From Selaginella moellendorffii (lineage: Eukaryota > Plantae > Lycopodiophyta), in assembly GCF_000143415.4 (NCBI RefSeq), contig NW_003314295.1, forward strand, positions 1 to 64,000: 64,000 nt of DNA, given 5' to 3'. Below, piece after piece: positions 1 to 51,964 of this stretch. The notes beneath the pieces were generated by a model. That model was not told the origin of the DNA. It searched no databases and worked only from the letters and a program-made list of their open reading frames with translations. The translations under genes and the position numbers were made by a program. Every line of letters starts with the position of its first letter. The first letter of the stretch is position 1.

Positions 1-778
1 GATCATGGGATGATATTTGGATATACTGTCACTGTGGATCCTTGGAACCTTGGGGGATAAATGGGGATAAAATAGCCACTAAGGGCTCTCTCATCAAACA
101 ATTGCCCCTTTTCTAGTTGGCTTAAGGGGAGAGAGATAAGGTGCGCTACAGTTGGTATCGGAGCAAATGGCACGGGTTCGATTCCCATTGATTAGTGGCT
201 ACTTAAAAATATAATATACCCTTGAGCAAGGTATATTCCTACCCCTAAATTTGAAATCGTACGTATTGGGCATCCATACGTATGTCCTTCCTCTTGTGTG
301 GAGTATCCACAGACGAAGGTATCCACTGTGGGACTGCGGTACAAGTGGATGATTAGTTGTCTCACATGGAATAGCTGATCTACACAATGGAAGGATTAGT
401 AGATTTAGTGTGGAAATGGAGGTGCTAATCGAAGGTATCCACTGTGGGACTGCGGTACAAGTGGATGATTAATTGTCTCACATGGAATAGCTAATCTACA
501 CAATGGAAGGATTAGTAGATTTAGTGTGGAAATGGAGGTGCTAGTTCCCTTTAGCTCAGTAGGGGTTGCTAGTCAATAGTCAATGAGGACATTGACATCT
601 CTGAAGGGGGGGTAAGTGTAGCGCATGTGATCATGGGATGAGATTTGGATATATTGTCACCGTGGATCCTTGGAACCTTGGGGGATAAATGGGGATAAAA
701 TAGCCACTAAGGGCTCTCTCATCAAGCAATTGCCCCTTTTCTAGTTGGCTTAAGGGGAGAGAGATAAGGTACGCTATA
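1..778 (+). mobile_element. TRIM (terminal-repeat retrotransposon in miniature), copy 1; 5' LTR clipped by the window edge
   Basis: Direct repeats at 1-150 and 618-778 (TGTAGCGCA...CGCTACA/TA). PBS TGGTATCGGAGC at 153-164 (tRNA-iMet type). [14 protein letters not shown] just before 618. The ~470-bp internal region is non-coding with two ~116-bp repeat units. Confidence 0.9.
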
Positions 779-3277: not shown

Positions 3278-6200
3278 TGTAGCATTGGTTTTCACCTTTT
3301 ATTCTATGATGTAATAGAATAACCATAAAGCAGAACCTAAACCCTTTATGTGCAACATATTACATGCCACATGTCTAAGGACAGTGGAATGGAACTTGAG
3401 TTTCAAAGCCTTAAGCCATTGAATGAAGGAATAAAGTCAAACTCCTAAACTTACAACTAAAGAGTAAAGGAATTGAAGCATGAAATTCAGTTTAAAGAGC
3501 AAAAGGACAAAAGCATGGAATAACATAGGAATAGTTTTAGAACATTCAATTTCCAAATGCCAAGAAGCAAGTTAAATAAAGTTTCCGAACTCTAAGCCCA
3601 TTATGCTACAAACGAAGGTCCGGTACTATTCCACAATCACTAGCTCCCTGTATCTAGCACTTGCACGCAAAATGGTGTCAGACAGAGTCTGGCACAATTT
3701 TGGCATATTGGTGGCCTAACATGAGGAGGAGGGTACTCCACCGACTAGAGCAGTGTGGAGCTTGGGCTTAGACCCAAGCCAGACGCAGAACAAGGAGTGA
3801 CACAACCCAATGGGAGCCAAACTAATGTCTCAAGTGATCGGACATACATTCCAACCACTATCCCTACTATACATTTGGAACCCCCCACAGCCCCCCCGCC
3901 CCCCTCTAAGGAACACATGCTTTGGGCTTTCACCCCAAGCCTCCCTTAGTACTAGGAGTTAGCCTCTAGGACAAGTCCGAAACTTATTAAATATGGAATG
4001 GTGCTAGATTGCGAATTTGGACACAGGATGAATACCATTGTGTTCAAGCCGATCTCTACATTTTGTAAATATGCCAAATGAGTTAATCTAGACACTTTCC
4101 ATAAATAGCACTTAGGACCGAAATGAGACTAACACAAAAGGCATGATAGCGAGGGTGTTTGGCAGACATGGTAAACTATCATCTAGCGAATATTGAGGGA
4201 CTAGTCTCAATATCGCGGGGGTTCTTGATACTAGCAAGTGCAAAATAATTACAGGAGTTTCTCAAACTAGGCCAAGTATGCTCAGCAAGAAACACATAGG
4301 GTTCCTACCTTATGTTTATCTGATTTAAGTACACAGTCATTGACCAGTTTCTCAACTAGCTCAAGTGGGAACAATAAAAAGAACCAATTGTACCGATCTT
4401 CTGCCGTCATGGCAGTAAGGAAAGAGTGTCCGTAAGGATTGGCCGACAAATATCTTTCGATACCCAAAGTCACATTTGCGACACTCTCCCCCCCTTGGGG
4501 AAGATCGACGTCTTCGTTGATGCATACCCGAGTCTAGCAAATCGTCAAGGAAACAACTCCGAAAGTTAACGGAAAGCACACTATGTGGGAAACACACCGA
4601 CTTAAATGAGTTATGGACAACCTCTCCTCTACATCCAAAGACGTTAAGACTCAAACACCCTTCGGCCGTCATCGACAAGGAAATGACTAACGGAGTTAGC
4701 CACCCTTGCTGCTCCGAGTACCACTCAGCTTACAAAGGAATGATACATCCCTACCCGCAGGGATATAGGGAGAAGGCCATAGGCCCAACTTCCCCTGAGC
4801 AAAAATCAACCCCGTTGGGAAAATTTAGACAACTATTATAAACTGGTAGATGAAGTTGTCTACACGACCACGCCCCTTTTCAAAAGTAAGTCAGCGAGAG
4901 AGAGGCAGGGACTTGTGATCAGTCTATAATAGTGATCCCCATGGTTATGGATTGGACCCATGCACCAAAGTGCCAAAGTCAACCTGCCAAAACTGACCCA
5001 AGTACTAACGAACGAGAGAAACGACACTTTGATTTATAGAAATATATTACTTTATTAATTTGCAAGATTTATTAAAAGATTTACAAAAGCTAATCTTTAT
5101 TACGATTCTCATACTCCATGAGCTCACTAGCATGTGTAAGATTCCTAAGAGGTTCCCAAGTTGATTCACAAGTCAGGTAACCTTTCCACTTAACTAGATA
5201 TTCCTTGGAACGACCACCACGAGCTTTGCAAGACAAGAGAATCGCCTTGACCTCATACTCCATGTCACCATTCACAACTTCCGGAGGGGGACGAATGTCC
5301 ACAGAGCGATCCGCATCAACATGATATGGTGCTAGTAAACTGACATGAAACACATCATGTACATTGGACAACTCATCCGGAAGATCCAACTTATAGGATA
5401 CATCACCAACTCGCTTCACCACCTGATAGGGTCCAACATATCTCGGCAATAACTTCCAAGATAAACATCCCTTAATGTTCAAGTTCTAGGAAGATAGCCA
5501 CACCTGATCTCCCACTTGATAGGATACATCCCGATGATGCTGATCCTTATCATGTTGATACCTATCTTGAGCTTTGCCCATCGCCTCAGTAGCCCTAGAC
5601 CAACCTTGGCGTAGCTGCTCCGCATAAGTCTCAACAGCCGGGACCAACACTTCGGACATAGGTTTCGGTACAACAATCTATTGAGAAACCCCACGAGCAT
5701 TCCCTTGCAACATCTCCCATGGAGAACAACCTATAGCATTATGAAATGTGTTGTTATAACATATTTTCTGCTGTATCCAAATGCTCAAACTAGTCGCGTT
5801 GGTCTGCCGCGACATAGTACCGTAGATAATCCTCAACTTGAGCATTCACACATTAGGTCTGCCCATCAGTTTGAGGACGATAAGCCGTACTAAACTTCAA
5901 CTTGGTACTGAACAACTGGAACAATGTGCCCAAAACTTCCCCTTAAATCTCGAATCTCTATCTGAGATCATCTCTTCAGGAAGACCACGAACCCGCACTA
6001 CTTCATGGAAAAAGAGCTTTGCTGCTTGTTTCGCATTCACTGTTCCCACAGTTGGAATGAAGTGTGCAATCTTCGACAACCGATCCACAACCACCATCAA
6101 AGTATCATAACTCTTAGACTTCGGCAAGCAAGTGACGAAATCAAGTGTCACACTTTGAAATGGCCATGCCGGTGCTGGAATGCACTGCAACTTTCCAGCC

Positions 6201-9200
6201 TGCTTCTCAGTTCTGCGCTTACATTGCTGGCATATTGGGCAAGAACGGACATAATCCGCTACATCACCTTCCATACCAGACCAGAAAAATCCCTTTTTCA
6301 ACGAAGCCAAAGTCTTTTGCTGTCCACCATGTCCCGCTGCCGGAACATCATGATATTCCTGCAGAAAAAACTGTTGCAGATCCTTAGAGGGAAGATACAA
6401 TCTTTCTTGTTTTTAGAATATAAGCCCATCCTGAACTGAGAATGAATTTCGCATTAGGGGATCCTCTAGATCGACCTCAGCATCAGCTGCCTGCCGTCTT
6501 TTTTTCTGACAGCAACTTTTGCTACCTCGCTACCAGAGTTTTACTTTGACAACTCTGTACGGTGTAAGATTGCCTTCGCCAATGGATCACTTCCATACGA
6601 AGCCCGAACGTCCTCTAACCAGTCTGAATTAATTGCCGATATTGCCCAGAATTGAGCCTGACGACTCAACGCATCCAGAACAATATTGTCTTTACCAGGT
6701 TTATATATGATTTCAATATCATATCTAACAAGCTTCTCTTGCCAACGAGCTTGCTTCAGCGTAAGCTTAGGCTGCATAGCAAAGTAGCTCAGTGTGTTAT
6801 TATCTATATAAACCTTGGCATGTCCACCCAAGTAGTGTCTCCAATGTTCTAGGGCTGACACTATAGCAAATGTTTCTTTCTCATGTGTTGGCCATCTTCG
6901 TTGGGTCTCATCCAATTTCTTGGAATAGAACGCAACGGGACAACCATGTCACCTTAGCATAACATCAACTGCTTTGTCACAACCTTGCTGCAACACAGCA
7001 CCAGTAGCATAGCCAGATGTATCACAATGCACTTCGAAGGGTTTATCAAGATCTGGGATCCTGAGAACAGGAACCATAGTCAAGATCTCCTTCAACCGTA
7101 GAAAAGCACGCTGGCAAGCTGGTGTCCAATGAAATGGAATACTACTCTTCGTCAACTCAATTAATGGAAGAGCAATCCTTGCAAAATTGCAAACAAACTT
7201 ATGATAGTATCCTGCCAAACCAAGAAAGGAACGAACATCTGATATAGTGGTCGGGACTTCCTAAGACTTCACCGCTTCCACCTTCTTTGGATCGACTTCA
7301 ATCACGCCACCACCAACTATATGTTTGAGAAAGTTTACGTGCAATTGACCAAAAATGCATTTACTTTCCTTAGCATACAATTTGTGTTCGCGCAACTTCT
7401 GAAACACTAGCTCCAAGTGTTTCAAATGATCCTCCAATGTTTCACTAAAAACTAGAACATTGTCGATATATAGGACAATAAATGTATCCAAATAATCTTC
7501 GAATATTCTATCCATCATAGTGTTGAACGTTGCCAGAGCATTGCATAACCCGAATGGCATGACAAGGAACTCATAAGATCCATACCGAGTCTTAAAGGCT
7601 CTCTTCTCCACATCCTGATCCGCCACCCATATCTGATGATACCCGAACCGCAAATCAAGTCGCGTAAAATACTTAGCCTCTAAGAGTTGGTCAAACAAGT
7701 CATTAATGCAAGGCAAAGGATAACCATTCTTGACCATGATCTTGTTGAGTGCTCAATAGTCGATACACATCCTCATAGTTCCATCCTTTTTTATAACAAA
7801 AAGGACTGGTGCTCCATAAGGTGATTTGCTTGGTCAGATATGACCTTTGTCAAGAAGCTTTGTGAGTTGATTCTTGAGTTCAGCCATCTCCTTGATATTC
7901 AACCAATATGGAGCTTTTGTAGGTGGTTTAGAACCCGGAATAACCTCAATCCGATTATCAACCTCACGGCTAGGAGATAGCCCTGGTGGCAAATCCTTCA
8001 AGAAGATATCCTGATTCCGTGCCAACAATTCCAATATCTTCATTGGTATAAGATCAACCCCATCGCCGATTCGAACTGAGTCACCAATACCCTCAGCTTC
8101 CATCACTTGAACCCAAAATGTCTGACATCCCCTCTTAGCTGCTTTTTGAGCGGCCCTTGCAGTCAGGAACTTTGCATCCCAATTCTTTGAGGAACACTTT
8201 TGCAACTAAAAGGACACATCGGGACGTCCTTCTGACTTCAATGTAATACGACTTTATCCAGCACCATAAATCCCTTTTATATACTTGTTGAAGAAATCCA
8301 TACCAAACACCATCTGAAAATCTAGTATCTTCAACACTACCAAGTCCACTCTTTCTTTCCACTTGGATATCTTTATTAGAACATCACTCACAAACTTTCT
8401 AGATACTTGCCCACCTTCCGTAAACCAGAAGTGCATAGGCGACATTTGCTCAGCATTCAATCCTAACAAATTAACTAAGTCTTCGGATATCACGCTGTGC
8501 GTAGCTCCCGTGTCAATCATCTCTCGGATTCGGTATCCACGGACAAAGCCTACCAGATACATCAACAGATCAGTGTTTGCATTGACTGCAAGAAAAGCTT
8601 GAGGAAAGCAACGAAAGTTACTCACCTCCTCTTCCTCATAGTTTGCATATGACCAACTCGTCAACCCCTTCGACTTCACCTCCACCATCTTTCCTCATAA
8701 CATTAACACAAAACCTTGTCTTATACTTGTTGGGACATTCCGAGGACTTATATCCCGACTCTCCACAATGGAAGCAATGACCCACACTACCCATTCTGCT
8801 AGGAGCAGGTTTTGCAGGTTGCTACTGCTTGTACCCACCAGGAGGAGGAACAAAGGGCCTAGGACCAGAAGAAGTTGCTGGTGGTCTCCAACCACCACCA
8901 CCTTTGTTAACTGTTGCTTGTGAGCCTCTAGAGCGGAACTTGCCTTCCACTCTCTGTTTCTAATCACCTTGTTTATTCCCTTTATTCTTATCCGAGTTAC
9001 CAGCATACGATTGCTGATATTGTTCCATGAGTGAGTGACTAAAGGCAACTTGCTGTGCTGCCTCCTTACACTCCAGGCACGTCTTTGGCTTAAACTTCAA
9101 AATCTCATTGTGAGAAAGTGAACTTAAACTTTCCAGGAAATAACTTCGAGCATCTTCGTCACTCATATTTGCAATCATAATGTGCTTCTGAGCAAACGCA

Positions 9201-11195
9201 TTGACGTAATGCATGAGGTCCCCTCACTGCTTTAACTGCCGCAGCTCTGCGCGAAGTCTCAGACCAAGATCATCCGGCAAGTATTCCTTACGGATGCGAG
9301 ACCGCATCTTGGTCTAGCTTCTAGTCTGCCCTTTTTTAGCACACACTTGGCGCCACCAAGTTTTGGCATGATCAGTAAGAAAGGATTGCACGCACACAAC
9401 TTTCGTATGATCATCTACGTATACCGCTATGAAATAGTTTTCTATATCGTAGACCCAGTCTTCCAAAACCTAATAGTCCCGCATGCCTCTAAAATTAGGT
9501 GGTTTCGGGGGCTTGAACTTTAAAACTCGTGCAATCGGGGGCGGCTGCAGAACTTCATCATCTTTAGAACTTGAAAAGGAGTTCGGTTGTTTAGGCATAG
9601 CTGGTTTAGCTGCCTTAGCTTCTTTCTTCTTCTTCTTGTTCTCTTTCTTCAATTTGCAAATCTCCTTTCGCAAATTCTCGATCTCAACTTCTTGAGCCAT
9701 ACGCTGCAATGCCATAGCATCTAGCTCTTCCTCTTCTAACTCGGCCTCAGCCTCTTCCACAGCATCTCTAGCAGGAGTTTCCTCCTCTTGATTCTCCCGT
9801 CTAGAGGTTTCAATGTCATCAGCACGGTTCCTTTTCACCATCCCGCTAGCTACATACATGCCTCTATCAGTAACTGAGCATGCATATAACGTTCTTACTG
9901 AATGGTGCAATCCAACTAATCCTACACAGGTTGCTTCGGATCTATTAAAAAAGTCTCTGCGTATGCAACTTCCGACAAAAGTTGGATAGGAATCACTGAG
10001 ACAATTTCTCTGATACCAAATGTAGCGCACTTGAATTTGGAGCCGAACTCCAAGCCCATTGCGCTATGAATGAGGGTCTGGTACTATCCCACGAGCACCA
10101 GCTCCCCGANNNNNNNNNNNNNNNNNNNNNNNNNNNNNNNNNNNNNNNNNNNNNNNNNNNNNNNNNNNNNNNNNNNNNNNNNNNNNNNNNNNNNNNNNNN
10201 NNNNNNNNNNNNNNNNNNNNNNNNNNNNNNNNNNNNNNNNNNNNNNNNNNNNNNNNNNNNNNNNNNNNNNNNNNNNNNNNNNNNNNNNNNNNNNNNNNNN
10301 NNNNNNNNNNNNNNNNNNNNNNNNNNNNNNNNNNNNNNNNNNNNNNNNNNNNNNNNNNNNNNNNNNNNNNNNNNNNNNNNNNNNNNNNNNNNNNNNNNNN
10401 NNNNNNNNNNNNNNNNNNNNNNNNNNNNNNNNNNNNNNNNNNNNNNNNNNNNNNNNNNNNNNNNNNNNNNNNNNNNNNNNNNNNNNNNNNGGAATGCAAA
10501 ACAAGGAGCGACACAGCCCAGCGGGACCCAACTAAAGGTCCCAAGGGACCAGACAGGCATCCCAACCATTACCCTTCCCAAACATTGGGACCCCCCCAAA
10601 TCCCCCCCCCCCCCCCCCCGAGGGACACACGCTTTGGGCTTTCACCCCAAGCCTCCCTTAGTACTAGGAGTTAGCCTCTAGGACAAGTCCAAAACTTACT
10701 AAATACAGAATGGTGCTAAATTGCAAATTTGGACACGGGACGAATACCATTGTGTTAAGGCTGATCTCTACATTCCGTAGATATGCCAAATGAGCTAATC
10801 TAGACACTTTCCATAAATAGCACTTGGGACCAAAATGAGACTAACATAAAGGGCATGATAGCGAGGGTGTTTGGCAGACACGATAAACTATCATTTAGCG
10901 AATATTGAGGGACTAGTCTCAATATCACGGGGGTTCTTGATACTAGCAAGTGCAAAATAATTATAGGAGTTTCTCAAACCAAGCCAAGTATGCTCAACAA
11001 GAAACACATAAGGTTCCTACCTTATGTTTATCTGATTTAAGTATACGGTCATTGACCAGTTTCTCAACTAGCTCAAGTGGGAATGATAAAAGGAACCAAC
11101 TGTACCAATCTTCTGCCGTCATGGCAGTAAGGAAAGAGTGTCTATAAGGACTAGCCGACAAGTATCTTTTGATACCCAAAGTCACATTTGCGACA
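3278..11195 (-). mobile_element. Ty3/Gypsy chromovirus-type LTR retrotransposon, decayed
   Basis: 5' LTR 11195-10021 (contains an N gap). PBS TGGTATCAGAG immediately inside 10021. Gag 10030-8700 with a CFHC..C knuckle remnant. Protease DTGA (8254-8688), RT (7261-7737, YIDNVLV), RNase H (6541-7218), integrase (5479-6400, HHCC zinc finger) and chromodomain (5090-5482, YLVKWKG..TWEP). PPT at 4484-4500. 3' LTR 4483-~3278. Many stops and frameshifts. Confidence 0.95.
10110..10490. other. Assembly gap (N run)
   Basis: Run of N inside the 5' LTR. Confidence 1.
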
Positions 11196-13565: not shown

Positions 13566-16004
13566 ATGGCGATGGAGAAGGGCAAGAGAAAGGTGTGCGT
13601 TTCACTCTTTCTGTTTCTCGAGTGAGTGAGAGATTTCTGTAGAGACTGCGCACGCAAGAAACCACCCCGGAGGAGCAGCGAAGCCGGCATTCCAAGCACC
13701 GCCGCATCGACTCCTCCCAGGTATCTATCTATCGCTGCCGCAAATCTTCTTTGCTCACTTTGCTCAGCCAGGCCGGGGATCTCAAAGCCAAGCTCGAGAG
13801 CAAAGACGCGGACCTCAAAGAGGTCCACGCGCTCCGGGACGATGGCTACGGCCCTCTCCTGGCTGCGCCTTCCCTCAGCCCCGAGATCGAGAAGGCGCTC
13901 TGGAAAGCCCACCACGCCAAGATCACGGAGTTTCGCTCCCAGATGCAAAGAGCCGCCGAGAAGCAAAAGAGCGACCGCGTCGGCAAGAAGACGCTCAAGA
14001 ATGTGGTGGCGCCTTTGATCGACTTCATAGCCAGCAGCTCCAACTTCTACTCGGAGCTTGTTTCCAGGGTGAGAGTGAGGCATGGCCTCGGTGGGACCGT
14101 CTCGGATAGCTGTGACAAGAGCTTGGACGAGAGCGAGGCGAGAGAGTTCCGCGAGACTTGTCACCGGCTGCTACTGCGCCTCGGGGACTTGGCTCGCTAC
14201 AAGGAGGTGTATGGAGTGAGCCTTGGCAAGAGGAACTATTCCACCGCGGAGGACTACTACGTGCAAGCCTCGAGGCTTTGTCACTGTGAAGGTGGAGCGC
14301 ATGGACAGGTGCGAGGATCTCGATTGTTTTTCTGCTCGTTCTTTCGGTTCTAAGTGCTTGATCTCTAGCTGGCGATCCTGGCGACCCATGCGGGAGATAG
14401 AGTTCGTGCTGTGTATCACTATCTGAGGAGCTTGTTTGTGAAGATGCCGTCTCCAACGAGCCACAGCAACCTTCTCCTTCTTCTGGAGAGTAAGGTATCC
14501 ATTTATTGAGCACGATGAGAGAAGTTGATGGGGATTTTTTCAGTCGGACGCCATCGCTGAAGCCAGCCAAGGATCGTCCAACTTTGACAATCTCTTGAGG
14601 CTCTTCGAGATCTTACTCCTGAAAACTGGGTGAGTGCATTAGCTTGAGACACGCAAATGGTTTTGATACCCTTGCAGTTTCGACAATTTGCAGAAGGTGC
14701 TGGATGGCACTCTGAACGAACTCGAGCGATCGGTGGGAACTCCCTCTAAAGTTTGCGATCCAGCAGAGCCAACCATGGGAAAAGTTTTCCTGGGAATACA
14801 GATCGTGACGATACTAGCGTGCTCCATCGAAGACTTCCATCTCGGCCTCGTCTGTAAGACTTCTCCGCCAAGGAGCTCGCTGCATGAGACTCTGGCGTGC
14901 GCATTCAAAGTCGTGCGCACGCTGGCGGCGATCGGCGATCCAACCATGCTCCCGGCGCTCGTCATCTTCACAGCAGGGCTCGCAGGCAGCGAGGACACCG
15001 TGCGGGCCACCGCAGAGTCCGACGAGCTCAGGAGGAGCTTCCTGGATGCCTTGGAGCGGGCGGAGAGCTTCTTCCAGGCACTGAGTGTCTTCTCCGAGGA
15101 ATCCTTGTCAAGGCTCTCCATGAGCCAGGAGGAGCTCACGCAGGGAAGACGCGACGCTCTCTGGGAGGACCATGAGCTGCAAGGCTTTGTTCCTCTCGGC
15201 CGGTACCACGAGTCTCTGAACTTTGGCTTCCACTACCTGGCTTGCGACTCCAAGCAGCTCGACTGGAAACGTCTTCGAAGATTGGAGGCTTCCTTGCGAG
15301 CTCTCGCGGAGATGGCAGGCTTGTCCAAGGATACAACTTCCAGTCAAGCGGAAACGGTGTCCACAAGTCTGGGCTCGGTTCTGGACAGGCAGCTAGCCGA
15401 GCTCAAAGTTGATACGGGCTTGTCGAAGAACACTTCTTCTAGTCAAGCAGATGAAGAAGCAGCAACTATATCGACGAATCTCAGCTCAGCGCAGCTAGAC
15501 GATCTCAAGGTTGATATAGCAGACTTGTCAAAAGTTGGATTTCTCAACGAGGCCGAGGAAGCGGGATCCACCGAACTCGAAGAGCTTCCTGTCAAGTTCT
15601 CTCCTAGTCTGGAAGATTCATTCTTCGCAAAGCAGTTTCTAAAATCTGTAACTGGATCCACCGACTTAGTTCTTCTTGAACAAGCACCGGAGTTTCCTGA
15701 ATCACTCGAGGATGATCATGGCCAAGGCCTGAGGGATTTCGAGGACGACGTCATACCAGTAAGTTTTTTACTTGCTTGCTATACGTGCTTGGTAGAGTTT
15801 GATCGTCTTGGTGTCTTGGTGTCTAGTTTCCAGCAGGAGACGAAGGTGCCACGGACAATAGCAACGATGAGGATCTGCAAGACGATATTTATCTACCCTC
15901 GCAATCACAGGTACAATCAAGGAAAGTTTGAAATAAGTTTTGACGTTGTGTACATTTATCATGCAGGAAGATGCGTTGAACTGGAGATCGCTTAGCTCGT
16001 TTTG
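13566..16004 (+). CDS. SMG7/EST1-like TPR protein (NMD/telomerase-associated family), multi-exon
   Basis: ATG at 13566 follows an AAACCCTA telo-box. EST1-family motifs: LLLRLGDLARYKEVY, AEDYYVQA...G.AHGQ|LAILA...AVYHYLRSL, and LWEDHELQGFVPL. Short GT-AG introns. The 3' exon structure is approximate. Confidence 0.85.
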
Positions 16005-18767: not shown

Positions 18768-20408
18768 TTAAACTTTAATCCATGGTTCTGGGACAAATGG
18801 CATTACATCAATTAGATATTCTGCAAGGTCCAAATACCCTGCTCTGCCAAAAACGTCAACCATGCAACTGTAATGTCGTATTATTCTCTTTAGACCATAG
18901 TCATTGGTAACAGAACAAAAATTAGAGCAAGCATCCATTACATTTCCTAAGTGGTTGCACACAAGCAAAATAGAAACAAAAGATATCTCATCAGGCATTT
19001 CAACCAAGCTCAACTCATTTAAAAGTCTTACAGCTCTTAAACCCTTACTTCCATTCAGCAATGAATTCCAAGATGCCACATTTGTCTCAGGCATTTGAGC
19101 AAAGAGCCTTTGTGCCTTTCCAGGTACCCCATTAAGAACGTATCCAGATAGCATAGTGTTCCATGATATGATATCTCGCTGCCTCATTCCATGGAACACT
19201 TGCTCCGCGATGTGCATATGCCCTGCTTGAGCATATGCAGAAACCATGATGTTACACGAGACTAGATCGTTTTCTTGCATTGAATCAAAGAGTATTTTTA
19301 CTTCATCTGTTCTATGGCAGACCAAAAGCGCGTGAAGCATGGTGTTAAAGGAAAAAATGTTCCATTCTGGCATCTGGTTAAAGACACAAACGAGTTCCTC
19401 GACTTTCCCAGTTTGGGCATAAGCATCAAGAAGAACATTCGTGGAGATAATATCGTGTTGTTCCATAGCTTGGAAGAAGCGCCTTAATTCTACTAGATTT
19501 CCATTCCGAGAGAGACCGGAGAGCATCACGGTCGAGCAAACCAGATCCAAATCCTTCATTCTACTAAACAGTTCCATTGCCTCATCCACTTGACCTCTAG
19601 AAACAAACGCAGCAAGCAGTGTGGTGCTAGAGACGATGCTCCTTTCGGGCATTTTTTCGTAGAGGATCCTGGCCTCCTCAGCATGCCCGCACAGGGAGTA
19701 AATCGCTAGCATCGAATTGCAAGACACAAGATTGTGCTCTTTCATACCCCGAAAAAACAAATCTTTGGCCTCCTCGAGATTTTCTCTTGCGTCTGAACCA
19801 TAAGCAGACAGCATTGCGTTGCAACAGGCAAGATTCCACTCGTGCATGGAGCAGTAAAACACATGCCTAGCTTTTGCAAAACGCCCACTTTGGGCATACG
19901 CTGTAAGCATGGAGCTCCACACAACAATATCTCTCTCTGGCATGTTTAGGAACAATTGTTCAGCTGAAACTAGATCAAAATCTTGACAAAACGCCTTTAG
20001 TATTGTGGATAAGGTAACCAAGTCTCTCTCCTTCATTAAACTAAGAAGTGCTTTTGCTCTTTCAACTTGCCCATCTTGGGCATATGCCAAAAGAAGAGTA
20101 TTCCAAGAAACCAGATCCCATTCTGGCATATTGTGAAACAAATATTGTGCTTCGTGCATTCTATTTGCTTTTGCAAAGAATGAAAGGAGCGCGCGGTAAG
20201 CCACCGTGCTGTGCTGGGGCATTCCATCAAATAACCGCTTCGCCTCCTCCAGATGCCCATTCTGGGCATAAGCCGTGAGGAGCAAAACCCACGAATACAA
20301 GTTCCTCTTCTCTCCGAGCGCAGAGAAGACACTCCGCGCGCGGACGACGTCGCCAGCCTTGCCGTAAGACTGAATCAAGCGGTTTGTCGCGAGCAAATCG
20401 GAAGGCAT
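18768..20408 (-). CDS. PLS-class PPR protein, ending early in the E domain
   Basis: 546-aa intronless ORF of ~31-aa repeats (F..MPE.D.VSWN.LL.AYAQ.G). It ends HYSCMVDVFGRAG...MPFVPEPWIKV*. Confidence 0.9.
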   Translation of the reverse strand: MPSDLLATNRLIQSYGKAGDVVRARSVFSALGEKRNLYSWVLLLTAYAQNGHLEEAKRLFDGMPQHSTVAYRALLSFFAKANRMHEAQYLFHNMPEWDLVSWNTLLLAYAQDGQVERAKALLSLMKERDLVTLSTILKAFCQDFDLVSAEQLFLNMPERDIVVWSSMLTAYAQSGRFAKARHVFYCSMHEWNLACCNAMLSAYGSDARENLEEAKDLFFRGMKEHNLVSCNSMLAIYSLCGHAEEARILYEKMPERSIVSSTTLLAAFVSRGQVDEAMELFSRMKDLDLVCSTVMLSGLSRNGNLVELRRFFQAMEQHDIISTNVLLDAYAQTGKVEELVCVFNQMPEWNIFSFNTMLHALLVCHRTDEVKILFDSMQENDLVSCNIMVSAYAQAGHMHIAEQVFHGMRQRDIISWNTMLSGYVLNGVPGKAQRLFAQMPETNVASWNSLLNGSKGLRAVRLLNELSLVEMPDEISFVSILLVCNHLGNVMDACSNFCSVTNDYGLKRIIRHYSCMVDVFGRAGYLDLAEYLIDVMPFVPEPWIKV

Positions 20409-26480: not shown

Positions 26481-26980
26481 CTGTCTCATCACTTTTCTTT
26501 TAGACTACTTCCAGGATTGAGGAGCAATGTAGCGCACGTGGTTTTGACCCTTTATCCTATGGTGATTTACCATAGGATAACACCATGAAGCGGAACCTAA
26601 ACCCTCTTTGTGCCACGTGACAGATGCCACGTGTCACATGCCACGTGTCCATAGGAACCTAAGGTTCAGGGCCTTGGGCCACTGAACAAAGGAACGGTGC
26701 CAAACTCCCAAGCATGGAGCCAAGGAGTGACGGAACCGAACCACAGAGCAACTCCCGAGCATAAAGCCCAAGGAGCGAAGGGACAGGAGCCTGGAGCGAC
26801 TTGGAACAGTCCTAGAGTAACCAACATCCCAATGCTAGGACTAGCACGCAAAACGGAGCCAAACGGAGTCTGGCGCTATTTCGGCATACCGGTGGCCTAA
26901 CGCGAGGACATGGGTACTCCACCAACTAGCATGGAATGGAACTTGGGCTTAGACCCAAGTCGGACGCAGAACAAGGACAG

Positions 26981-27950
26981 TGTAGCGCACTTTATCTCTC
27001 TCCCCTTAAGCCAACTGGAAAAGGGGCAATTGCTTGATGAGAGAGCCCTTAGTGGCTATTTTATCCCCATTTATCCCCCAAGGTTCCAAGGATCTACGGT
27101 GTCCAAGGATCCACAGTGACAGTATATCCAAATCTCATCCCATGATCACATGCGCTACACTCACCCCCCCTTCAGAGATGTCAATGTCCTCATTGACTAT
27201 TGACTAGCAACCCCTACTGAGCCAAGGGGAACCAGCACCTCCATTTCCGCACTCAATCTACCAATCCTTCCATTGTGTAGACCAGCTATTCCATGTGAGG
27301 CAACTAGTCATCCACCCGTACTGCAGTCCCACGGTGGATACCTTCGTCCGTGGATACTCCACATGGCACCTCCATTTCCGCACTCAATCTACCAATCCTT
27401 CCATTGTGTAGACCAACTATTCCATGTGAGGCAACTAGTCATCCACCCGTACTGCAGTCCCACGGTGGATACCTTCGTCCGTGGATACTCCACATGGCAC
27501 CTCCATTTCCGCACTCAATCTACCAATCCTTCCATTGTGTAGACCAGCTATTCCATGTGAGGCAACTAGTCATCCACCCGTACTGCAGTCCCACGGTGGA
27601 TACCTTCGTCCGTGGATACTCCACACAAGAGGAAGGACGTACGCATGGATGCCCAATACGTACGATTTCAAATTTAGGGGTAGGAATATACCTTGCTCAA
27701 GGGTATATTATACTTTTAAGTAGCCACTAATCAATGGGAATCGAACCCGTGCCATTTGCTCCGATACCAACTGTAGCGCACCTTATCTCTCTCCTCTTAA
27801 GCCAACTGGAAAAGGGGCAATTGCTTGATGAGAGAGCCCTTAGTGGCTATTTTATCCCCATTTATCCCCCAAGGTTCCAAGGATCCACGGTGTCCAAGGA
27901 TCCACGGTGACAGTATATCCAAATCTCATCCCATGATCACATGCGCTACA
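26981..27950 (-). mobile_element. TRIM copy 2, complete
   Basis: 179-bp LTRs at 26981-27159 and 27772-27950. TSD GACAG on both sides. PBS and PPT on the minus strand. Three 131-bp internal units. Confidence 0.95.
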
Positions 27951-29042: not shown

Positions 29043-29995
29043 TGTAGCGCACTTTATCTCTCTCCCCTTAAGCCAACTGGAAAAGGGGCAATTGCTTGAT
29101 GAGAGAGCCCTTAGTGGCTATTTTATCCCCATTTATCCCCCAAGGTTCCAAGGATCCACGGTGTCCAAGGATCCACAGTGACAGTATATCCAAATCTCAT
29201 CCCATGATCACATGCGCTACACTCACCCCCCCTTCAGAGATGTCAATGTCCTCATTGACTATTGACTAGCAACCCCTACTGAGCCAAGGGGAACCAGCAC
29301 CTCCATTTCCGCACTCAATCTACCAATCCTTCCATTGTGTAGACCAGCTATTCCATGTGAGGCAACTAGTCATCCACCCGTACTGCAGTCCCACGGTGGA
29401 TACCTTCGTCCGTGGATACTCCACATGGCACCTCCATTTCCGCACTCAATCTACCAATCCTTCCATTGTGTAGACCAACTATTCCATGTGAGGCAACTAG
29501 TCATCCACCCGTACTGCAGTCCCACGGTGGATACCTTCGTCCGTGGATACTCCACATGGCACCTCCATTTCCGCACTCAATCTACCAATCCTTCCATTGT
29601 GTAGACCAGCTATTCCATGTGAGGCAACTAGTCATCCACCCGTACTGCAGTCCCACGGTGGATACCTTCGTCCGTGGATACTCCACACAAGAGGAAGGAC
29701 GTACGCATGGATGCCCAATACGTACGATTTCAAATTTAGGGGTAGGAATATACCTTGCTCAAGGGTATATTATACTTTTAAGTAGCCACTAATCAATGGG
29801 AATCGAACCCGTGCCATTTGCTCCGATACCAACTGTAGCGCACCTTATCTCTCTCCTCTTAAGCCAACTGGAAAAGGGGCAATTGCTTGATGAGAGAGCC
29901 CTTAGTGGCTATTTTATCCCCATTTATCCCCCAAGGTTCCAAGGATCCACGGTGACAGTATATCCAAATCTCATCCCATGATCACATGCGCTACA
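29043..29995 (-). mobile_element. TRIM copy 3 (duplicate of copy 2 within the tandem duplication)
   Basis: Same TSD GACAG. LTRs at 29043-29221 and 29834-29995, the latter lacking a 17-bp repeat. Confidence 0.95.
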
Positions 29996-32900
29996 GACAG
30001 GCACACAAGCGGGAGCTAGACTATGCCTCAGGTTGGTCGGCCATGCCCGACCTACCCACTATCCTTACTATACATTTGGAACCCCCCACAGCCCCCCCCC
30101 CCCCCCCCCCCCTTGAGGAACACACGCTTTGGGCTTTCACCCCAAGCCTCCCTTAGTATCAGGAGTTAGTCTCTGGGACAAGCTCGAAACTTACTAAATA
30201 TGGAATGTCCCTAGATTGTGAATTTGGACATGGGACGAACACCATTGTGTTCAGGACGATCTCTACATTCCGTAAATATGCCAAATGAGCAAATCTGGAC
30301 ACTTTCCATAAATAGCATTTGGGACCGATATGAGACTAACACAAAGGGCATGATAGCGAGGGTGTTTGGCAGACACGGTAAGCTATCATCTAGCGATATT
30401 GAGGGACCAAGCTCAATATCGCGAGGGTTCCCAACACTAGCAAGTGCAAGTCAACGAATGAGTTTCTCTAACCAGGTCAAGTATGCTTGACAAATAGCAC
30501 GTAGGAATTCCGTCCTTATGCCCATCTGGTCAAGTGCACACGTGAAGACCAGTTTCTCAACTAGCTTAGGCGGAGACTAATAACGGGCCCAGCAATACCG
30601 ACCTCCTGCCATCGTGGCAGTAAGGTAAGAGTGTCCGTAAGGACTGGTCGACAGGTAACTTTCGATACCCGAAGTCACATGCGCGACAAGCAAGATGTTG
30701 TGTTTCCCTTGTCTCAAGGATTGATATAGAGAGAATGAGGGTTCATGTTGCTTACTTCTAACTCATACATAGACTTTGAGTTCTAGCAAGTCCTTTTAGT
30801 GAAAGGTGAGAGCTTGTTGGTTTTCTTTTTCATGACTGAACAAAGTTTTATGAACTTTACAACTTGTATAGTAATTCTCCCTCCATATCCCCTTTTTTTT
30901 TTGGCCCTCATTTTTCTTTCTTTCTTTATTTTTTGCTTGATTATGCTCATACATACTATCAAATTTACAATTCTACTTTCCATGGTGTCTTTTCTCCTCA
31001 TTTACATCAATATCTAGCCTTTGTCCATGTTTCTTTCTGGATCCTTTGCCACTTAGTTCTTTGCTTTTTCATGCTAATAAATGTCCACAACTTGTTCAAT
31101 GTTGGTGTTCTTCCCTCATTGTCATGCTTGACCTTCTTTGTCCATTTCTAAGCTTGATCTAATTTTTTTTTTTAATTCATACTCACTTGGCATTCTTGTA
31201 AAATTGCCTTTAACCTCTTTGGTTTTTAGAGCTAGCCAACTATAGAGAAAAGTGTAAGTATGAAAGAGAAAGCTTTCAAAAGCTTTAGAAGTTGGGAAGC
31301 ATACTTTTTCTCATGACTTGTGCTCCAGATCTGCAATTTTTCACCTTTTTTCTCGTAGTCACTCTTGTTGAGGAGATTAGACACTCAAGTCCACTCACTC
31401 CATCATTCAGATCTTGAATGGCTCTTTTGAATCTTAAACTCATCCCTGTAGTGGGTGATATGGTAGAGTGCCCTCAGCTCTAACCACAACTCCACCTTAG
31501 CTCTAAATCGTCTGATCAACAACGGAGGTGGAAGCTATGAAGACTCACTTTGCTATTATTGTCCAGGAAACTCTTGGGATCGAGAGAGTGGAGGAGAAGC
31601 TTCTTCTAGCCAAGCAGCCTTCTACACCTTTTTAGTAGCTTTGTTGAGATTTGAGCTCCTAATTTGTGTGGTGCCCACTTCTTCTTGTTGTAGACCTTTG
31701 CTGCCCACTTCTTCTCATTGGACATGGCTGCTCTCCAATTCTTCTTGAACACTATTTTGTAAAGTATATAGAGATCAGAGATAAGATCCATTTCCAAGTC
31801 CACTTCTAACTATGTTAACTAGACTTGCAACTCGAACGGCAGTGGATCTAATAAAAGTTTTGCATCCCTCCTTAGGGCCTTTTGCAAGCTCCATGATTTT
31901 GTTCTTCTTCTTTGCACCAACCAAGATTGGATACAGGTGCTAGAAGCAAGATCTCTTGGTCATGTTCTTCACCACTTCTCTTGCCACTAGAAGATTTTGC
32001 TATTGGATTGGCACTATGATAATTTTCTCTTTGCTGCTTGGGTGATCATAATCATATTGGACTTGTCTTGCCATCATTGTTGCAGCCACAACTCATGGTC
32101 CTTCCTTCTTGCTTAGCTGATCATGGTGCCGAGGATTCTATCCACTCCCAGGAAGTGTCACCTTTGCTTCTTCCTTGTTTGGCTGAAGTGTGACATTGGA
32201 CAAAAGGCTCTTCAACCTTGGACATAGCTTATTGTTGACCACCGACGCCTCTGAATCTGCAATTTCAGTGGTATCCTTCTTTTTCCTTGTGACCAGGGCA
32301 GGCAAGCAGTCAAAGAACATGTTTTTCACCTTGTTACCTTGCTCCTTGATGGTTGTGCCTTGAAACCTCATTGTTGAACCCTATTCATCTTTAAAAAATT
32401 CATTGTATAATGAAGGATAAAACAAATCTTAATAGCAACTTAGTTGCATGTGCTTTAGGTTACAAGGCAATAATGAGGTAGTATGAGCTATAGCTGGCTT
32501 CAAGTTCCACTGTTAGCTGTAGTTCATCCCTTGGAGTTGAGAGCTCTATAACATGTTGAGCTCATGAATTGCAAGTGGTTCTAAAAGTATAGTAGGGAGA
32601 GTGTGGGGGTTGGACTCCAATAGAACCAGTTTGGCCAGGAAAGGCTAGTGTGACTTAGGAAAGCTATACTCATATGTCAGGTGATAATATAACCACTAAG
32701 GAGTCCAAGGTGAGAGTGAATACAGACGAACAAGCAGGGTAGCTTGGTGAAGTATTCAAAAGAGTTGATTCTAGCTCCCTCAGGAGATCAAATGGTCAAT
32801 GCTTCTAATTTAAATGTGGGTGGCACTACCTACTTGGATACTTGGTGTGGCTCATTGGAACTTCGCTCAAAGGTAGAAGGTGGGGAAAGTACCCATAAGG

Positions 32901-37774: not shown

Positions 37775-39308
37775 TGGAGTGCTCCTCCTGGCTCACGGAG
37801 AGCGTTGACAAGGATTCCTCGGAGAAGACACTCAGCGCCTGGAAGAAGCTCTCCACCCGCTCCAAGGCATCCAGGAAGCTCCTCCTGAGCTCGTCGGACT
37901 CTGCGGTGGCCCGCACGGTGTCCTCGCTGCCTGCGAGCCATGCTGTGAAGATGACGAGCGCCGGGAGCATGGTTGGATCGCCGATCGCCGCCAGCGTGCG
38001 CACGACTTTGAATGCGCACGCCAGAGTCTCATGCAGCGAGCTCCTTGGCGAAGAAGTCTTGCAGACGAGGCCGAGATGGAAGTCTTCGATGGATCACGAT
38101 CTGTATTCCCAGGAAAGCTTTTCCCCTGCTTGGCTCTGCTGGATCGCAAACTTTAGCGGGAGTTCCCACCGATCGCTCGAGTTCGTTCAGAGTGCCATCC
38201 AGCACCTTCTGCAAATCGTCGAAACTGCAAGTGTATCAAAACCATTTGCATGTCTCAAGATAGTGCACTCACCCAGTTTTCAGGAGTAAGATCTCGAAGA
38301 ACCTCAAGAGATTGTCAAAGTTGGACGATCCTTGGCTGGCTTCAGCGATGGCATCCGACTGAAAAATCCCCATCAACTTATCTCATCATGCTCAATAAAA
38401 TGGATACCTTACTCTCCAGAAGAAGTAGAAGGTTGCTGTGGCTCGTTGGAGACGGCATCTTCACAAACAAGCTCCTCAGATAGTGATACACAGCACGAAC
38501 TCTATCTCCCGCATGGGTCGCCAGGATCGCCAGCTAGAGATCAAACACTTAGAACCGAAAGAACGAACAGAAAAACAATCGAGATCCTCGCACCTGTCCA
38601 TGTGCTCCACCTTCAAAGCCTCGAGGCGTAGTCCTCTGCGGTGGAATAGTTCCTCTTGCCAAGGCTCACTCCATACACCTCCCTGTAGTGAGCCAAGTCC
38701 CCGAGGCGCAGTAGCAGCCGGTGACAAGTCTCGCGGAACTCTCTCACCTCGCTCTCGTCCAAGCTCTTGTCACAGCTATCCGAGACGATCCCACCGAGGC
38801 CATGCCTCATTCTCACCCTGGAAACAAGCTCCGAGTAGAAGTTGGAGCTGCTGGCTATGAAGTCGATCAAAGGCGCCACCACATTCTTGAGCGTCTTCTT
38901 GCCGACGCGGTCGCTCTTTTGCGTGATCTTGGCGTGGTGGGCTTTCCAGAGCGCCTTCTCGATCTCGGGGCTGAGAGAAGGAGGCCGTAGCCATCGTCCC
39001 GGAGCGCGTGGACCTCTTTGAGATCCGCGTCTTTGCTCTCGAGCTTGGCTTTGAGATCTCTCTCGGCCTGGCTGAGCAAAGTGAGCAAAGAAGATTTGCG
39101 GCAGCGATAGATAGATACCTGGGAGGAGTTGATGCGGCAGTGCTTGGAATGCCGGCCTCGCTGGGTGGTTTCTTGCGTGTGCAGTTTCTACAGAAATCTC
39201 TCACTCATTTGAAAAATAGAAAGAGCGAAACACACACCTATCACCTTTTTGCCAGTCCACCACGACTTGTTCCTCTTGCAGCATCACAGCTATTTTGTCA
39301 AATGCCAT
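37775..39308 (-). pseudogene. SMG7/EST1-like pseudogene, paralog of 13566-16004
   Basis: Highly similar in exons and introns to 13590-15135. It carries frameshifting deletions and insertions and is truncated after ...VSQEEH. Confidence 0.92.
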
Positions 39309-39429: not shown

Positions 39430-42400
39430 ATGTCGCAGGAAAGGGTGCTTGTTCCTTTGATGGCTGGCAGCCGCGCACAGCTCAATGGTGAGCTCACGGA
39501 GGATTTCACTTGTGTTTCCAGGGCCGCGCTGCTTGGCCTTCTCAATACCGCGCTGAGCAATGGTAGCGGCGACGCGCAAAACATAGAGGTGACCATTTTC
39601 TCTCTTGCAAGTTGTACTAATCTTCCTTTCCCCTGCTCTCCAGCCTCTTGTGTGTCTCCTGGTCTCAACTGACGCGGAGATTGTGTTACTGGCTTTGGAA
39701 GTCATTGCCTCGATCGTGCGCTCGCATAAGCTCGCTCATGACAAGCAGACGAGCAAGATCCTGCGGGAGTTTTCTCGGGGCTGGGCGGGGAGTAACGGGC
39801 CTCTGGATTTGGAGTCCTGCATCTTTGGCGGTGACGCGGAACAAGCTCGTCTCGCATCCAGTCTCCACTTCGAGTTTTATCACGACGGGAAGCTGGAAGT
39901 CATTCAGCTGGGCATGGAAGCTCTGCGCATGGACGACTGTTTGGCTCTCTTCAACAGGCTGGTGTGCGAGTTCAACGTCCCCATGGAGCTCCGGTTTGCG
40001 TTGCTGACGAGAATCCGCTTCGCAAAGGCATTCTCGTCCACGGCAGCGAGGCAAACGTACGTGAGGATCTTGATCTTGTCTTTGGAGCTGATCCAGTGGC
40101 GGAAGCTCATGTCTAAGCAGCTGGCGGATGTCGTGGTGAGCGGCAAGGACGTTCCCGAGAGCATCCGGGTGGCGGCGCTCTATGCCTTGACGGCTTACGG
40201 GAAAAGAGACATTTTTACGCGTGCGAACAGGGAGAGGAAGGTGAAAGAGTTTCTCAGCGGGAACAGCCAGCATTCCAGTGACTTCATCCAGGCCTTGCTT
40301 TTCAACTCTTCTGTGGCCCGGCTCGATGGCAAAGACTTGGGAGTCGCAAGCATCGACAGCGTTTTGGCATGGCTGGAGGACGAGCTCGAGGGCCCTCGAG
40401 ACGGACGTATGATCAAGAGCCTACTGCTCTCCGAGGCTCTGCGTGCTCCGGGGGCTGTCCATGGCGACCAGAAGGCCCGGCTGGAGCGATGCTTGGTCAA
40501 AGTTTTCGGAAACTCCAAGCTGTTTGGAGGTGAAGTGTTTGATACAGCGGCTGGTGTGCTGCTATCTTGGGGTTGGAGTGATCAAGTAAAGGCTGCGTTT
40601 ACGGAGGCTATGGTTTCGGAAGCTATTCCGTCTGGGTGGCAGATCACAGAAGCAGCCGTCACGTACTTCTTATCAAGGATGACGCCTGGGATTCAAACGA
40701 AGACGGTGGAGTTGATTCGAAGGGACGTCGCGAGCGTCTCTGACGTCGTGCTGCTGGAAGCACTAAGCCAGGACAGTTTTACGTCGTTGCTAATCGAGGC
40801 TGGCGGCTACGAGTTTCTCCAGCAGCTCCCGGGATATGTGCTGGAAAGGCCACGAAGGAGTGCTGCGCTCAATCTCAGCGACAGCTCCTACGTAGAGATT
40901 GCCAGGAGTCTCTCCTCGGATTTTGGAAAGTGTGCTTGGCACTCGGAGCGGCTAGCCAGAGTTGTCGAGTGGCTGTTGTTCGACAACAACGGTGTCTGCA
41001 ACCTTTCCTTCCTGAAGCAGCTCTACACGCACGGGGCACTCGATAAGCTTCTGGCCAGCCTTGAAGGGCTGGGAGGGTGGTCTTCACAGGCGGCATTACC
41101 ACCACTGGACGCATACTTCTCCACTTTGAAGCAGCTCCTGGAGAATCACTCGGCCCTCGTAGGGGTGGTCGTCGACGAAAGCAGACTGGTTCACCGGATT
41201 CTCCACGCCGTTGTTGCGGTGTTTCGACTTTGTCACGGGCTGGCTACTCCAGAGGCCGCCGAAACTCTCCTCCTCACTGTCTGGAAGCGATGTGACTGCC
41301 AGGAAAGGCAGCGGGTCCTGGTTTCTCTACTCAAAGAGCTGGGACGCGGAGGTGCCGCAGCTGCTACCGTGGTAGCTCTACTCGTTACCAAAGATGGTGG
41401 TGCTGCAGCATTTGCTCGAGCCCGAGGTGGGGTGGCGAGGACGGTGCTAGAGCTGCTCGAGTCTTCAGCGTCGCCTTCAGAAGATCTGCTGCGGATCCTA
41501 AACCGTATGTTTGAAGCTCGGGGTGACGACGACAGTGGCAATCCTTTTACTCCGACAGACTTGCCCGAGCAAAGCGACGAGCTCATGGCAAGGGCAGTAG
41601 TTTGGTATGGCAACTCCCTCCGATGCAGGACTACTCTCTGCATCTCGGAGCTTGCCAAGCTTGGTGAAACACTAACGAGGAATCACAGCGTTGCACAGGA
41701 GCTGCTAAAGGCGGGTGATTTGGCTGGCCTTGTCGACGCGATTCTGGAACTAGTCTCCGCGGATCCATGCTCCAAGAGCTACGCTTTCAGGACCGTGGTT
41801 CATTTGCTGGAAGATAGACAGATGCTGTATCATAGCATGGTGCGCAAGATCTGGACGTATATGAAGATGACCTTTGACACGAAGTTTGATAGGAGCTGCA
41901 AGAGGAAGTGTGACACGGGTCTCTTCGTGACGAGCTTCTCGTCCTTGGCCTTTAGAGAGCCCGATGTTTTCATGCAAGCGTCCTTTGATACCTGTGAAGT
42001 TGACGACGAGAACTACATGCGTTTGAAGGACCCCGACGTTTACCCGGATAGTAACGCCAGTGCTGCTGCTTCGGACGTCTTCACCCGGCTGCTGGATCTT
42101 CTTTTGGACAGGCTAGACGACATTGCGTTGGAGCTCTTGACAGAGATAGTTGACGAGATCCCAGGCACACCGCAAGCCGTGGACGCCGCGATTGTTGAGC
42201 GTGTTTTGCAAAGCAGCGTGGATGCAGCCTTGGTTCGCAAGTTCGTAGGCGCCTTGATACGGCGCGAGAAAGACAGTTCCATAACTCCAGCCTTGATGAG
42301 CGCGTTCTCGTCCCAGCCGGACACGGTGAAACTGGTCTACCTCTCCAGAAATGTGCAGTGCTGCTTCCAGTATATCACCATCCCAGTGGCCGACTGCATG

Positions 42401-51900: not shown

Positions 51901-51964
51901 AATCTCTGGATTCGCCACAAGCGCGAACGACACTGGCGAGGAATTGGATGGAGCAGCGCGCCAT
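48950..51964 (-). CDS. PLS-E-DYW PPR protein (organellar C-to-U RNA editing factor)
   Basis: 1004-aa intronless ORF with more than 20 PPR repeats and E/E+ domains. HSEKLA and CPDCH deaminase motifs. Ends CSCRDFW. Confidence 0.96.
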   Translation of the reverse strand: MARCSIQFLASVVRACGESRDLEEGRRVHAWIVGSGIWPDRFLANLLIQMYGRCGSPREARIVFEEAASSNSLSWSLLTVAYARNGYLEEAKRIFHRRPEWDVASCNAMLPTYATLGKVEESKAAFEKMLERNVISWNTMISMNAQNGYYKEAKVVFDKMPQWDVVSWNSIVAALGEIFDVARAKEVFEAMRQRDLVSWSSLVNVYGQSRQLVEAKAVFDRMPNWSVVTWNSLSQVYSQSGSIREAAEIFRAMPDKNLVSWNSMVQAYAQAGYTKQAKEVFDSMPRRDAFSWTAIVGAQNEEPSVAREFFYRMPMWNVVACTAMVASCTQSFQSHEAWRIFETMLARNIVTWNSMLSGLGSAGNFAKATLLFHRMPEWDLVSCNAMVAVLAHSSQLEQAKSLFDAMPEKDVLSWSTIVQAYAENGLVEEAKSAFDQMQEKNAMAWTSMIKAYAHSGNSHGAKLLFDKMPVRNVVSWTSMLSAFATTGHLGESEATFRKMPSHDLISWTAMVTAYAQCEAAAKAKQTFDSMPERSLFGWNVMASSFAANGHLEEAEAVFAAMPARDIISWNAMVATYGQNGLLSSAKRVFDEIPEKNVVSCTAMLAAYTQNGHVQDAKKMFASLHELDDGAMVSTMVAGFAQRGYIQEAKLLFQKSTTAAAHHQQDTVLYNTMLAGYAQNGYLDEARALFDRMASRNVVSWNSLVHAYAQNEQGVTALAVFQAMSSEGVRANDLTFMSLLAACCHLGLVETSRELFVSMLHDFGIKASQEHYCCMVDLLGRSGRLEEAHDLIESMPFLPSEAAWGSLLGACKIYRDAARAAEIADKLLELATESSVPYVTLASVYAAAGRHDDAARVGSMMKQRSLAKLLGVSMIEIDGRVHKFVVGDASHPKNEDIYEELRKIHAAMVERGYSPDTGEVLHYELSDEVKEQLVCLHSEKLAIAFGMMSTAPGTALRVLTNLRACPDCHTATKLISKIFKRQIVVRDSNRFHVFQGGVCSCRDFW

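Follow-up and report, generated by a model that had tools for sequence, protein, structure and literature searches.

The window, that is, the whole 64,000-nucleotide stretch of Selaginella moellendorffii DNA that was analyzed, opens with a short retroelement, two further copies of which lie on the minus strand, and also contains a decayed Ty3/gypsy chromovirus and several protein-coding genes. The short element is an ordinary non-autonomous, gene-less TRIM of this plant, whose anatomy and motif positions were read directly from the DNA (Table 1). Its LTRs are 162 bp long, have the termini TGTAGCGCA...GCGCTACA, and are 97% identical to each other within copy 1. The 5' LTR of copy 1 is without its first 12 nt because the window opens at base 1 of scaffold GL377599.1. 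The 5' flank of this copy is likewise off the scaffold, so the TSD was read from copies 2 and 3, which are bracketed by the 5-bp sequence GACAG; a paralogous empty site is present near position 3797. The PBS is one transition off the canonical plant iMet PBS. The element is 790-970 bp long and contains only short ORFs, the longest being a 126-aa antisense ORF. A second antisense ORF of 61 aa, initiated by ATG, runs over the B-box described below, the PBS, and most of the 5' LTR (3-188, minus strand; 29796-29981, plus strand); it is present in both independent copies and is probably fortuitous. A search of the protein collection with these two antisense ORFs revealed no homologues, and an exact look-up of four TRIM ORFs in the same collection found none. 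The element thus has terminal repeats of the 100-250 bp class, a PBS, a PPT, no coding capacity, a length below 1 kb, and a TSD of the 4-6 bp class, as TRIMs do. The family would be a new or uncatalogued one unless it corresponds to one of the SmoRetroS subfamilies. When the combined LTR-end and PBS pattern was used to scan metagenomes, a single unrelated contig was recovered, and a scan of viral sequences returned none.

Table 1. Positions of the TRIM features, the TRIM copies, and the chromovirus in the window.
Feature	Position	Strand	Observation
5' LTR, TRIM copy 1	1-150	+	direct repeat 1-148/629-776 (97%); alignment with copies 2 and 3
TATA-like GATAAAATAG	66-75	+	LTR sequence; putative role
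LTR segment complementary to leader	70-82; 3' LTR copy 698-710	+	inverted repeats
Two CAA motifs	95-97, 99-101	+	position 98 is G in the other LTR copies
CCCCTTTT with T4 at 109-112	105-112	+	only sense-strand T4 besides its 3' LTR twin at 737-740
A-box-like TGGCTTAAGGGG	118-129	+	2 mismatches to TRGCNNAGTGG; exact match to relaxed TRGYNNANNNGG
PBS TGGTATCGGAGC, tRNA-iMet type	153-164	+	2-nt spacer after LTR end at 150
B-box GGGTTCGATTCCC/T-arm-like hairpin GGG-TTCGATT-CCC	174-186	+	exact match; 10 nt 3' of PBS
Leader segment	192-204	+	12/13 complementary to LTR 70-82 and 698-710
Internal tandem repeat, 116 bp	314-543	+	2 units in copy 1; 3 units in copies 2 and 3
D-arm-like/A-box-like TAGCTCAGTAGG (TGGCTCAGTAGG in copies 2 and 3)	552-563	+	ca. 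40 nt before PPT
Polypurine tract (PPT) GAAGGGGGGG	603-612	+	sequence; homologous to chromovirus PPT region
3' LTR, TRIM copy 1	617-778	+	162 bp; T4 at 737-740; no B-box beyond
Decayed Ty3/gypsy chromovirus	3286-11195	-	PR, RT, RNase H, integrase (zinc finger), SH3-like domain, chromodomain
TRIM copy 2	26981-27950	-	3 repeat units; 17-bp duplication in both LTRs
TRIM copy 3	29043-29995	-	tandem-duplicate partner of copy 2; TSD GACAG

Copies 2 and 3 are carried by a 2.06-kb tandem duplication, the halves of which are 99.1% identical. Since both lie within this one duplication they represent a single insertion, and the window contains two independent insertions; the original prediction, which had cautioned that copies 2 and 3 are not independent, was right on this point. 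The duplication (25971-28035/28033-30080) comprises the whole TRIM and part of the LTR that hosts it, and may be genuine or else an artefact of assembly or haplotype. A 17-bp duplication in the 5' LTR distinguishes copies 2 and 3 from each other. The internal repeat unit is 116 bp long in copy 1 and 130 bp long in the other two copies (27235-27625; 29297-29687). The substitutions by which copy 1 stands apart from the other two recur position by position in each repeat unit, which indicates concerted evolution or unit duplication after the two subfamilies had split; nearly all of these repeat differences are transitions, the copy 1 base being A or T.

Comparison of the two independent copies revealed 96-97% identity in the LTR, 100% in the PBS, 98% in the segment 165-296, and 89% in the internal repeats. 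The block at 153-296, which is 98-100% identical between the two TRIM subfamilies, is the best-conserved part of the element.

The LTRs of the chromovirus are ca. 89% identical, and its 5' LTR contains an N-gap (10110-10490) and a long run of G (ca. 10600-10620). Two regions are common to this element and the TRIM. The first, of 28 nt, consists of the LTR end GTGCGCTACA, the spacer, and the PBS (score 39 versus 17±2.3 for shuffled sequences), and the second, of 52 nt, covers the sequence before the PPT, the PPT itself, and the start of the LTR (score 30 versus 16±2.2). Because the termini, the PBS, and the PPT region are shared, the chromovirus is a candidate helper lineage. As far as sequence goes, the link, which is new, bears the usual signature of a helper/parasite pair and gives the TRIM family a concrete candidate for its helper. 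The two independent TRIM insertions were each found within LTRs of the chromovirus family (811-940; 26528-26977 and 30011-30688); chromodomain-guided targeting to TE or heterochromatin DNA may account for this, or mere retention there. A fragment of the chromovirus RT, compared with the protein collection, had matches of at most 66% identity, with no Selaginella proteins of the same family among them. Just 3' of copy 1, on the plus strand at 1080-1400, integrase-like remnants with stops could be read by eye; this suggests that the copy 1 insertion is hosted by another decayed retroelement.

The original prediction held that this TRIM may assemble a tRNA-type Pol III promoter only at the junction of its 5' LTR and PBS, from a B-box in the leader and an A-box in the LTR. 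The B-box just past the PBS is indeed present and matches the consensus exactly. In 64 kb there are three matches to the strict consensus GGTTCGANNCC, against 0.31 expected, and all three are in TRIM copies. The motif, which sits in the internal domain and thus outside the LTR, extends into a perfect T-arm-like hairpin with a 3-bp stem and a 7-nt loop. At a similar offset past its PBS, the chromovirus has GATTCCTAT (GATTCCYAT) and no B-box.

An A-box-like motif had been placed ca. 45 nt upstream of the B-box and described as a loose match. Its position and distance stand, and so does its looseness: with two mismatches to the strict consensus TRGCNNAGTGG it is at chance level, since ca. 256 such matches are expected per window. 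The relaxed SINE-type consensus TRGYNNANNNGG is matched exactly in all six LTRs, with ca. 26 matches expected per window (both strands, 128 kb) and therefore a chance of ca. 1% that one falls in the right interval of ca. 40 nt. In the 5' LTRs of copies 2 and 3 the motif reads ...AAGAGG, the sole substitution being at an N position. From the end of the A-box to the start of the B-box there are 44-45 nt, a spacing resembling that of tRNAs with a long variable arm, and the distance from start to start, 57 nt, falls within the tolerance of type-2 promoters. Considered as a type-2 unit, then, the junction has an exact box B, a box A that is exact to the relaxed consensus but has two strict mismatches, and a gap of 45 nt. 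The TRIM contains four relaxed box-A matches in 780 nt, versus ca. 0.16 expected. The D-arm-like motif near the PPT (27213-27224 and 29275-29286, minus strand, in copies 2 and 3) is a closer fit to box A than the LTR motif; downstream of it there is no B-box at a usable distance. Relaxed A-box matches were also found in the U5 of the chromovirus (10055-10066 and 3597-3608), although that element, given its length of ca. 8 kb and its many T runs, cannot be a Pol III unit.

Two CAA motifs had been reported upstream of the A-box, and both are there. The TATA-like sequence lies ca. 30 nt upstream of a putative start at 96-108 and would suit either a Pol II gene or a plant Pol III gene. The T4 runs were found to be as reported: the two in the LTRs are the only sense-strand runs of four or more T, with none in the 624 nt between them. 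The layout recurs in copies 2 and 3, which have the same boxes and likewise no internal T4. The avoidance of T4 runs is not significant and makes a weak argument, P being ca. 0.11-0.31; a T4-free stretch of such length occurs in 11-16% of equal-sized windows of this sequence and in ca. 30% of Markov simulations run with the element's own composition. The LTR T4 also lies just upstream of the A-box. A start 10-20 nt before the A-box (ca. 98-108) would therefore place it within the first 5-15 transcribed nucleotides, so that Pol III would have to bypass the T4 of the 5' LTR and yet stop at its 3' twin.

We looked for a small-RNA ancestry of the motifs in several ways. ARAGORN predicted no tRNA-like gene in the window, and no Rfam family matched anywhere in it at gathering thresholds. 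The 5S_rRNA family had no match at gathering thresholds or at E<=10, and tRNA and SINE models likewise gave no hit. No Rfam hammerhead family matched, and the element thus does not carry the ribozyme in each LTR that marks a retrozyme. Rfam recognizes 13 nt of the B-box hairpin only, through the T-arm of its tmRNA model, and the likeness to tRNA ends there; a tRNA cloverleaf or tRNA-derived body is absent, D-arm or acceptor pairing being impossible by inspection. Identity as a tRNA, tmRNA, 5S RNA, SINE, or hammerhead is ruled out by these results. Inspection spoke against an origin of the motif by read-through of the tRNA primer, as beyond the PBS the sequence departs from the reverse complement of plant tRNA-iMet.

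B-box and T-arm sequences are near-palindromes, and the anti-PBS sequence GCTCCGATACC is only two mismatches from the B-box consensus. Promoter-like boxes next to a PBS may for these reasons arise from causes linked to reverse transcription. In a minimum-free-energy prediction, the 5' half of the PBS pairs with GATTCC of the TRIM B-box, and the analogous segment is involved in the chromovirus. This PBS/anti-PBS hairpin is not supported statistically: P was 0.16 for the duplex in the TRIM and 0.21 in the chromovirus, and local folds had z of ca. 0. The duplex between the LTR and leader segments of Table 1 is weakly supported (P was 0.028 when a narrow window was tested and 0.25 when the window was widened).

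We tentatively favor, with a confidence that stops somewhat short of even, the reading that the element depends on the chromovirus lineage and is transcribed by Pol II, and that the T-arm-like hairpin is part of its PBS/leader domain. The findings on its side are the TRIM anatomy and TSD, the two regions held in common with the chromovirus, the siting of both independent insertions in LTRs of that family, the chromovirus leader without a B-box and its U5 with relaxed A-boxes, the closeness of the anti-PBS to the B-box consensus together with the predicted pairing, the high identity of the block at 153-296, and the lack of any match to tRNA, 5S, or SINE models. The TRIM would parasitize the Ty3/gypsy chromovirus lineage with which it shares LTR termini, tRNA-iMet PBS, and PPT region. 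We infer that its full-length RNA would be made as that of the helper is, from a Pol II start in the 5' LTR. The B-box motif could then base-pair in two ways, on the one hand with the 5' half of the PBS and on the other, judging from plant tRNA-iMet, with the T-loop and stem of the primer. The hairpin may aid primer placement, the initiation of reverse transcription, or packaging, and its promoter-like look would be a by-product. There are precedents in Ty1 and Ty3, for which extended contacts of the tRNA-iMet T-arm and D-arm 3' of the PBS and 5'-3' cyclization are documented (PMC4974528). Like the extended or bipartite PBS of these elements, the TRIM has post-PBS sequence able to pair with the T-arm of tRNA-iMet. 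The complementarity between LTR/U3 and leader is analogous to CYC3/CYC5 of Ty1, as a computational likeness that is not statistically distinctive.

Several findings were counted against the Pol II reading. None of the proposed pairings is statistically distinctive. That an exact 11-mer B-box, a relaxed A-box at tRNA-like spacing, and a T4-free body should come together by coincidence has a probability of ca. 1e-5 to 1e-6 per family. Finally, the single chromovirus copy is old (its LTRs being 89% identical) and may have lost a motif.

A second possibility, which we consider rather unlikely, is that the motifs have no function at all. In that case the B-box would have arisen by chance or be a relic (for example a captured T-arm fragment, or a decayed inverted PBS), carried along by recent amplification from few master copies, and the A-box and the T4-free body would be coincidental. 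Very many LTR families have been scanned, so that rare coincidences are expected and are then picked out by a reader, and Repbase is said by Kojima to hold "not a few" LTRs with partial tRNA-like sequences (PMC10886601). Similarity to tRNA that ends at 13 nt, weak A-box and T4 statistics, and fold and duplex tests at background are all what such a reading would predict. It is harder to reconcile with an exact B-box less than ca. 25 nt from the PBS together with a properly spaced relaxed A-box, the joint probability of which is very low per family, and with the location of the B-box inside the best-conserved block of the element.

The split type-2 Pol III promoter of the original prediction, made up of the U5 A-box and the post-PBS B-box, seems to us unlikely as the promoter that drives the TRIM. 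On this account, which is built from sequence motifs, TFIIIC would bind both boxes, and Pol III would start 10-20 nt before the A-box, near the CAA at 99-101 or G104, leak through the T4 at 109-112, and stop at 737-740, which would leave an R of ca. 9-18 nt; solo and 3' LTRs would be silent because no B-box lies downstream of them. The confinement of the exact B-box to TRIM copies argues for it, as do the relaxed A-box that is exact in six LTRs with a lone substitution at an N position, the type-2-compatible spacing of 57 nt, the TATA-like and CAA motifs upstream (66-75 and 95-101), and the lack of an internal T4 in every copy in the window. Pol III-type TRIMs, both Cassandra-like and Helenus, occur in the S. 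moellendorffii genome (PMC10886601), and a tiny R is not disqualifying, because the terminal duplication of Cassandra is reported to be only 18 bp long (PMC10886601). The A-box, however, fails the strict consensus and is at chance level, T4 avoidance is not significant, and the same T4 would have to be both bypassed and used. In contrast to all Helenus families, the element shows neither a cloverleaf nor tRNA or SINE ancestry, and the candidate helper has relaxed A-boxes in its U5 without being a Pol III unit. With two independent copies to compare, the A- and B-boxes are conserved no better than their surroundings. B-box conservation is in fact uninformative here, because the comparison is limited to two independent copies that are 97-100% identical over their whole LTR-PBS-leader block.

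Canonical plant TRIMs, reportedly described by Witte et al. in 2001, have in common with the window element short LTRs, an iMet PBS, a PPT, the lack of coding sequence, a length below 1 kb, a 5-bp TSD, and a larger LTR retrotransposon, the putative helper, with shared ends; the window TRIM differs in adding the 13-mer B-box/T-arm motif 10 nt past the PBS and a variable 116-bp repeat. In S. moellendorffii, eight TRIM subfamilies with ca. 10,000 copies make up 1.19% of the genome, according to a survey in which promoters were not analyzed (Gao et al. 2016, PMC4717578). Helenus is the name given to TRIMs whose LTR contains a tRNA-derived sequence, and a class TRIMp3 has been proposed (Kojima 2024, PMC10886601). 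The only plant member of Helenus, Helenus-1_SMo, is from S. moellendorffii, and Pol III transcription is unproven for Helenus itself (PMC10886601). Helenus-1_SMo shares with the window TRIM the PBS TGGTATCGGAGC, the host genome, tRNA-type boxes A and B, and a T4 close to the end of the LTR. Its 120-bp LTR contains a full tRNA-like unit with both boxes inside, whereas the window TRIM has no tRNA-like sequence and its B-box is outside the LTR. Identity with Helenus-1_SMo was rejected: the termini differ, and the box-A segment of Helenus-1_SMo is absent from the window. The window TRIM is thus not a Helenus, because its LTR is unrelated and the Helenus tRNA-like unit does not occur in the window.

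Cassandra, the 5S-bearing TRIM reportedly described by Kalendar et al. in 2008, has an iMet-type PBS, as does the window element; a very short R would be common to the two if the latter were transcribed by Pol III. According to PMC10886601 and PMC7215508, the Cassandra promoter is a type-1 5S promoter (box A/box C) located wholly in the LTR, and its transcription is demonstrated. The window TRIM, in contrast, is without a 5S match. Were the Pol III reading true, a type-2 promoter would have been assembled across the LTR/PBS boundary without capture of a tRNA gene, giving a third, independently evolved design of Pol III LTR retrotransposon beside Cassandra and Helenus, one built from motifs. 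With this arrangement, promoter activity at solo LTRs and the 3' LTR would cease to be a problem, and TRIMp3 would gain a mechanistically distinct member in the sole plant with a known Helenus. If the Pol III reading is false, the locus serves as a caution that promoter-like boxes adjacent to a PBS can reflect reverse transcription.

The remainder of the window contains an inverted duplication of ca. 1.5 kb, the arms of which (13591-15135 and 37781-39239) are 89-95% identical. Past 64 kb, scaffold GL377599.1 is gene-dense, and TEs are unannotated in the GCA_000143415.2 record. Three intronless PPR genes, all on the minus strand, were found at 18768-20408, 48950-51964, and 53665-55428, one of them with E, E+, and DYW deaminase domains. 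They are accompanied by a HECT/DUF908 ubiquitin-ligase-like ORF (39605-44405) and an LRR gene (59945-61231), a gene content that is typical for S. moellendorffii.
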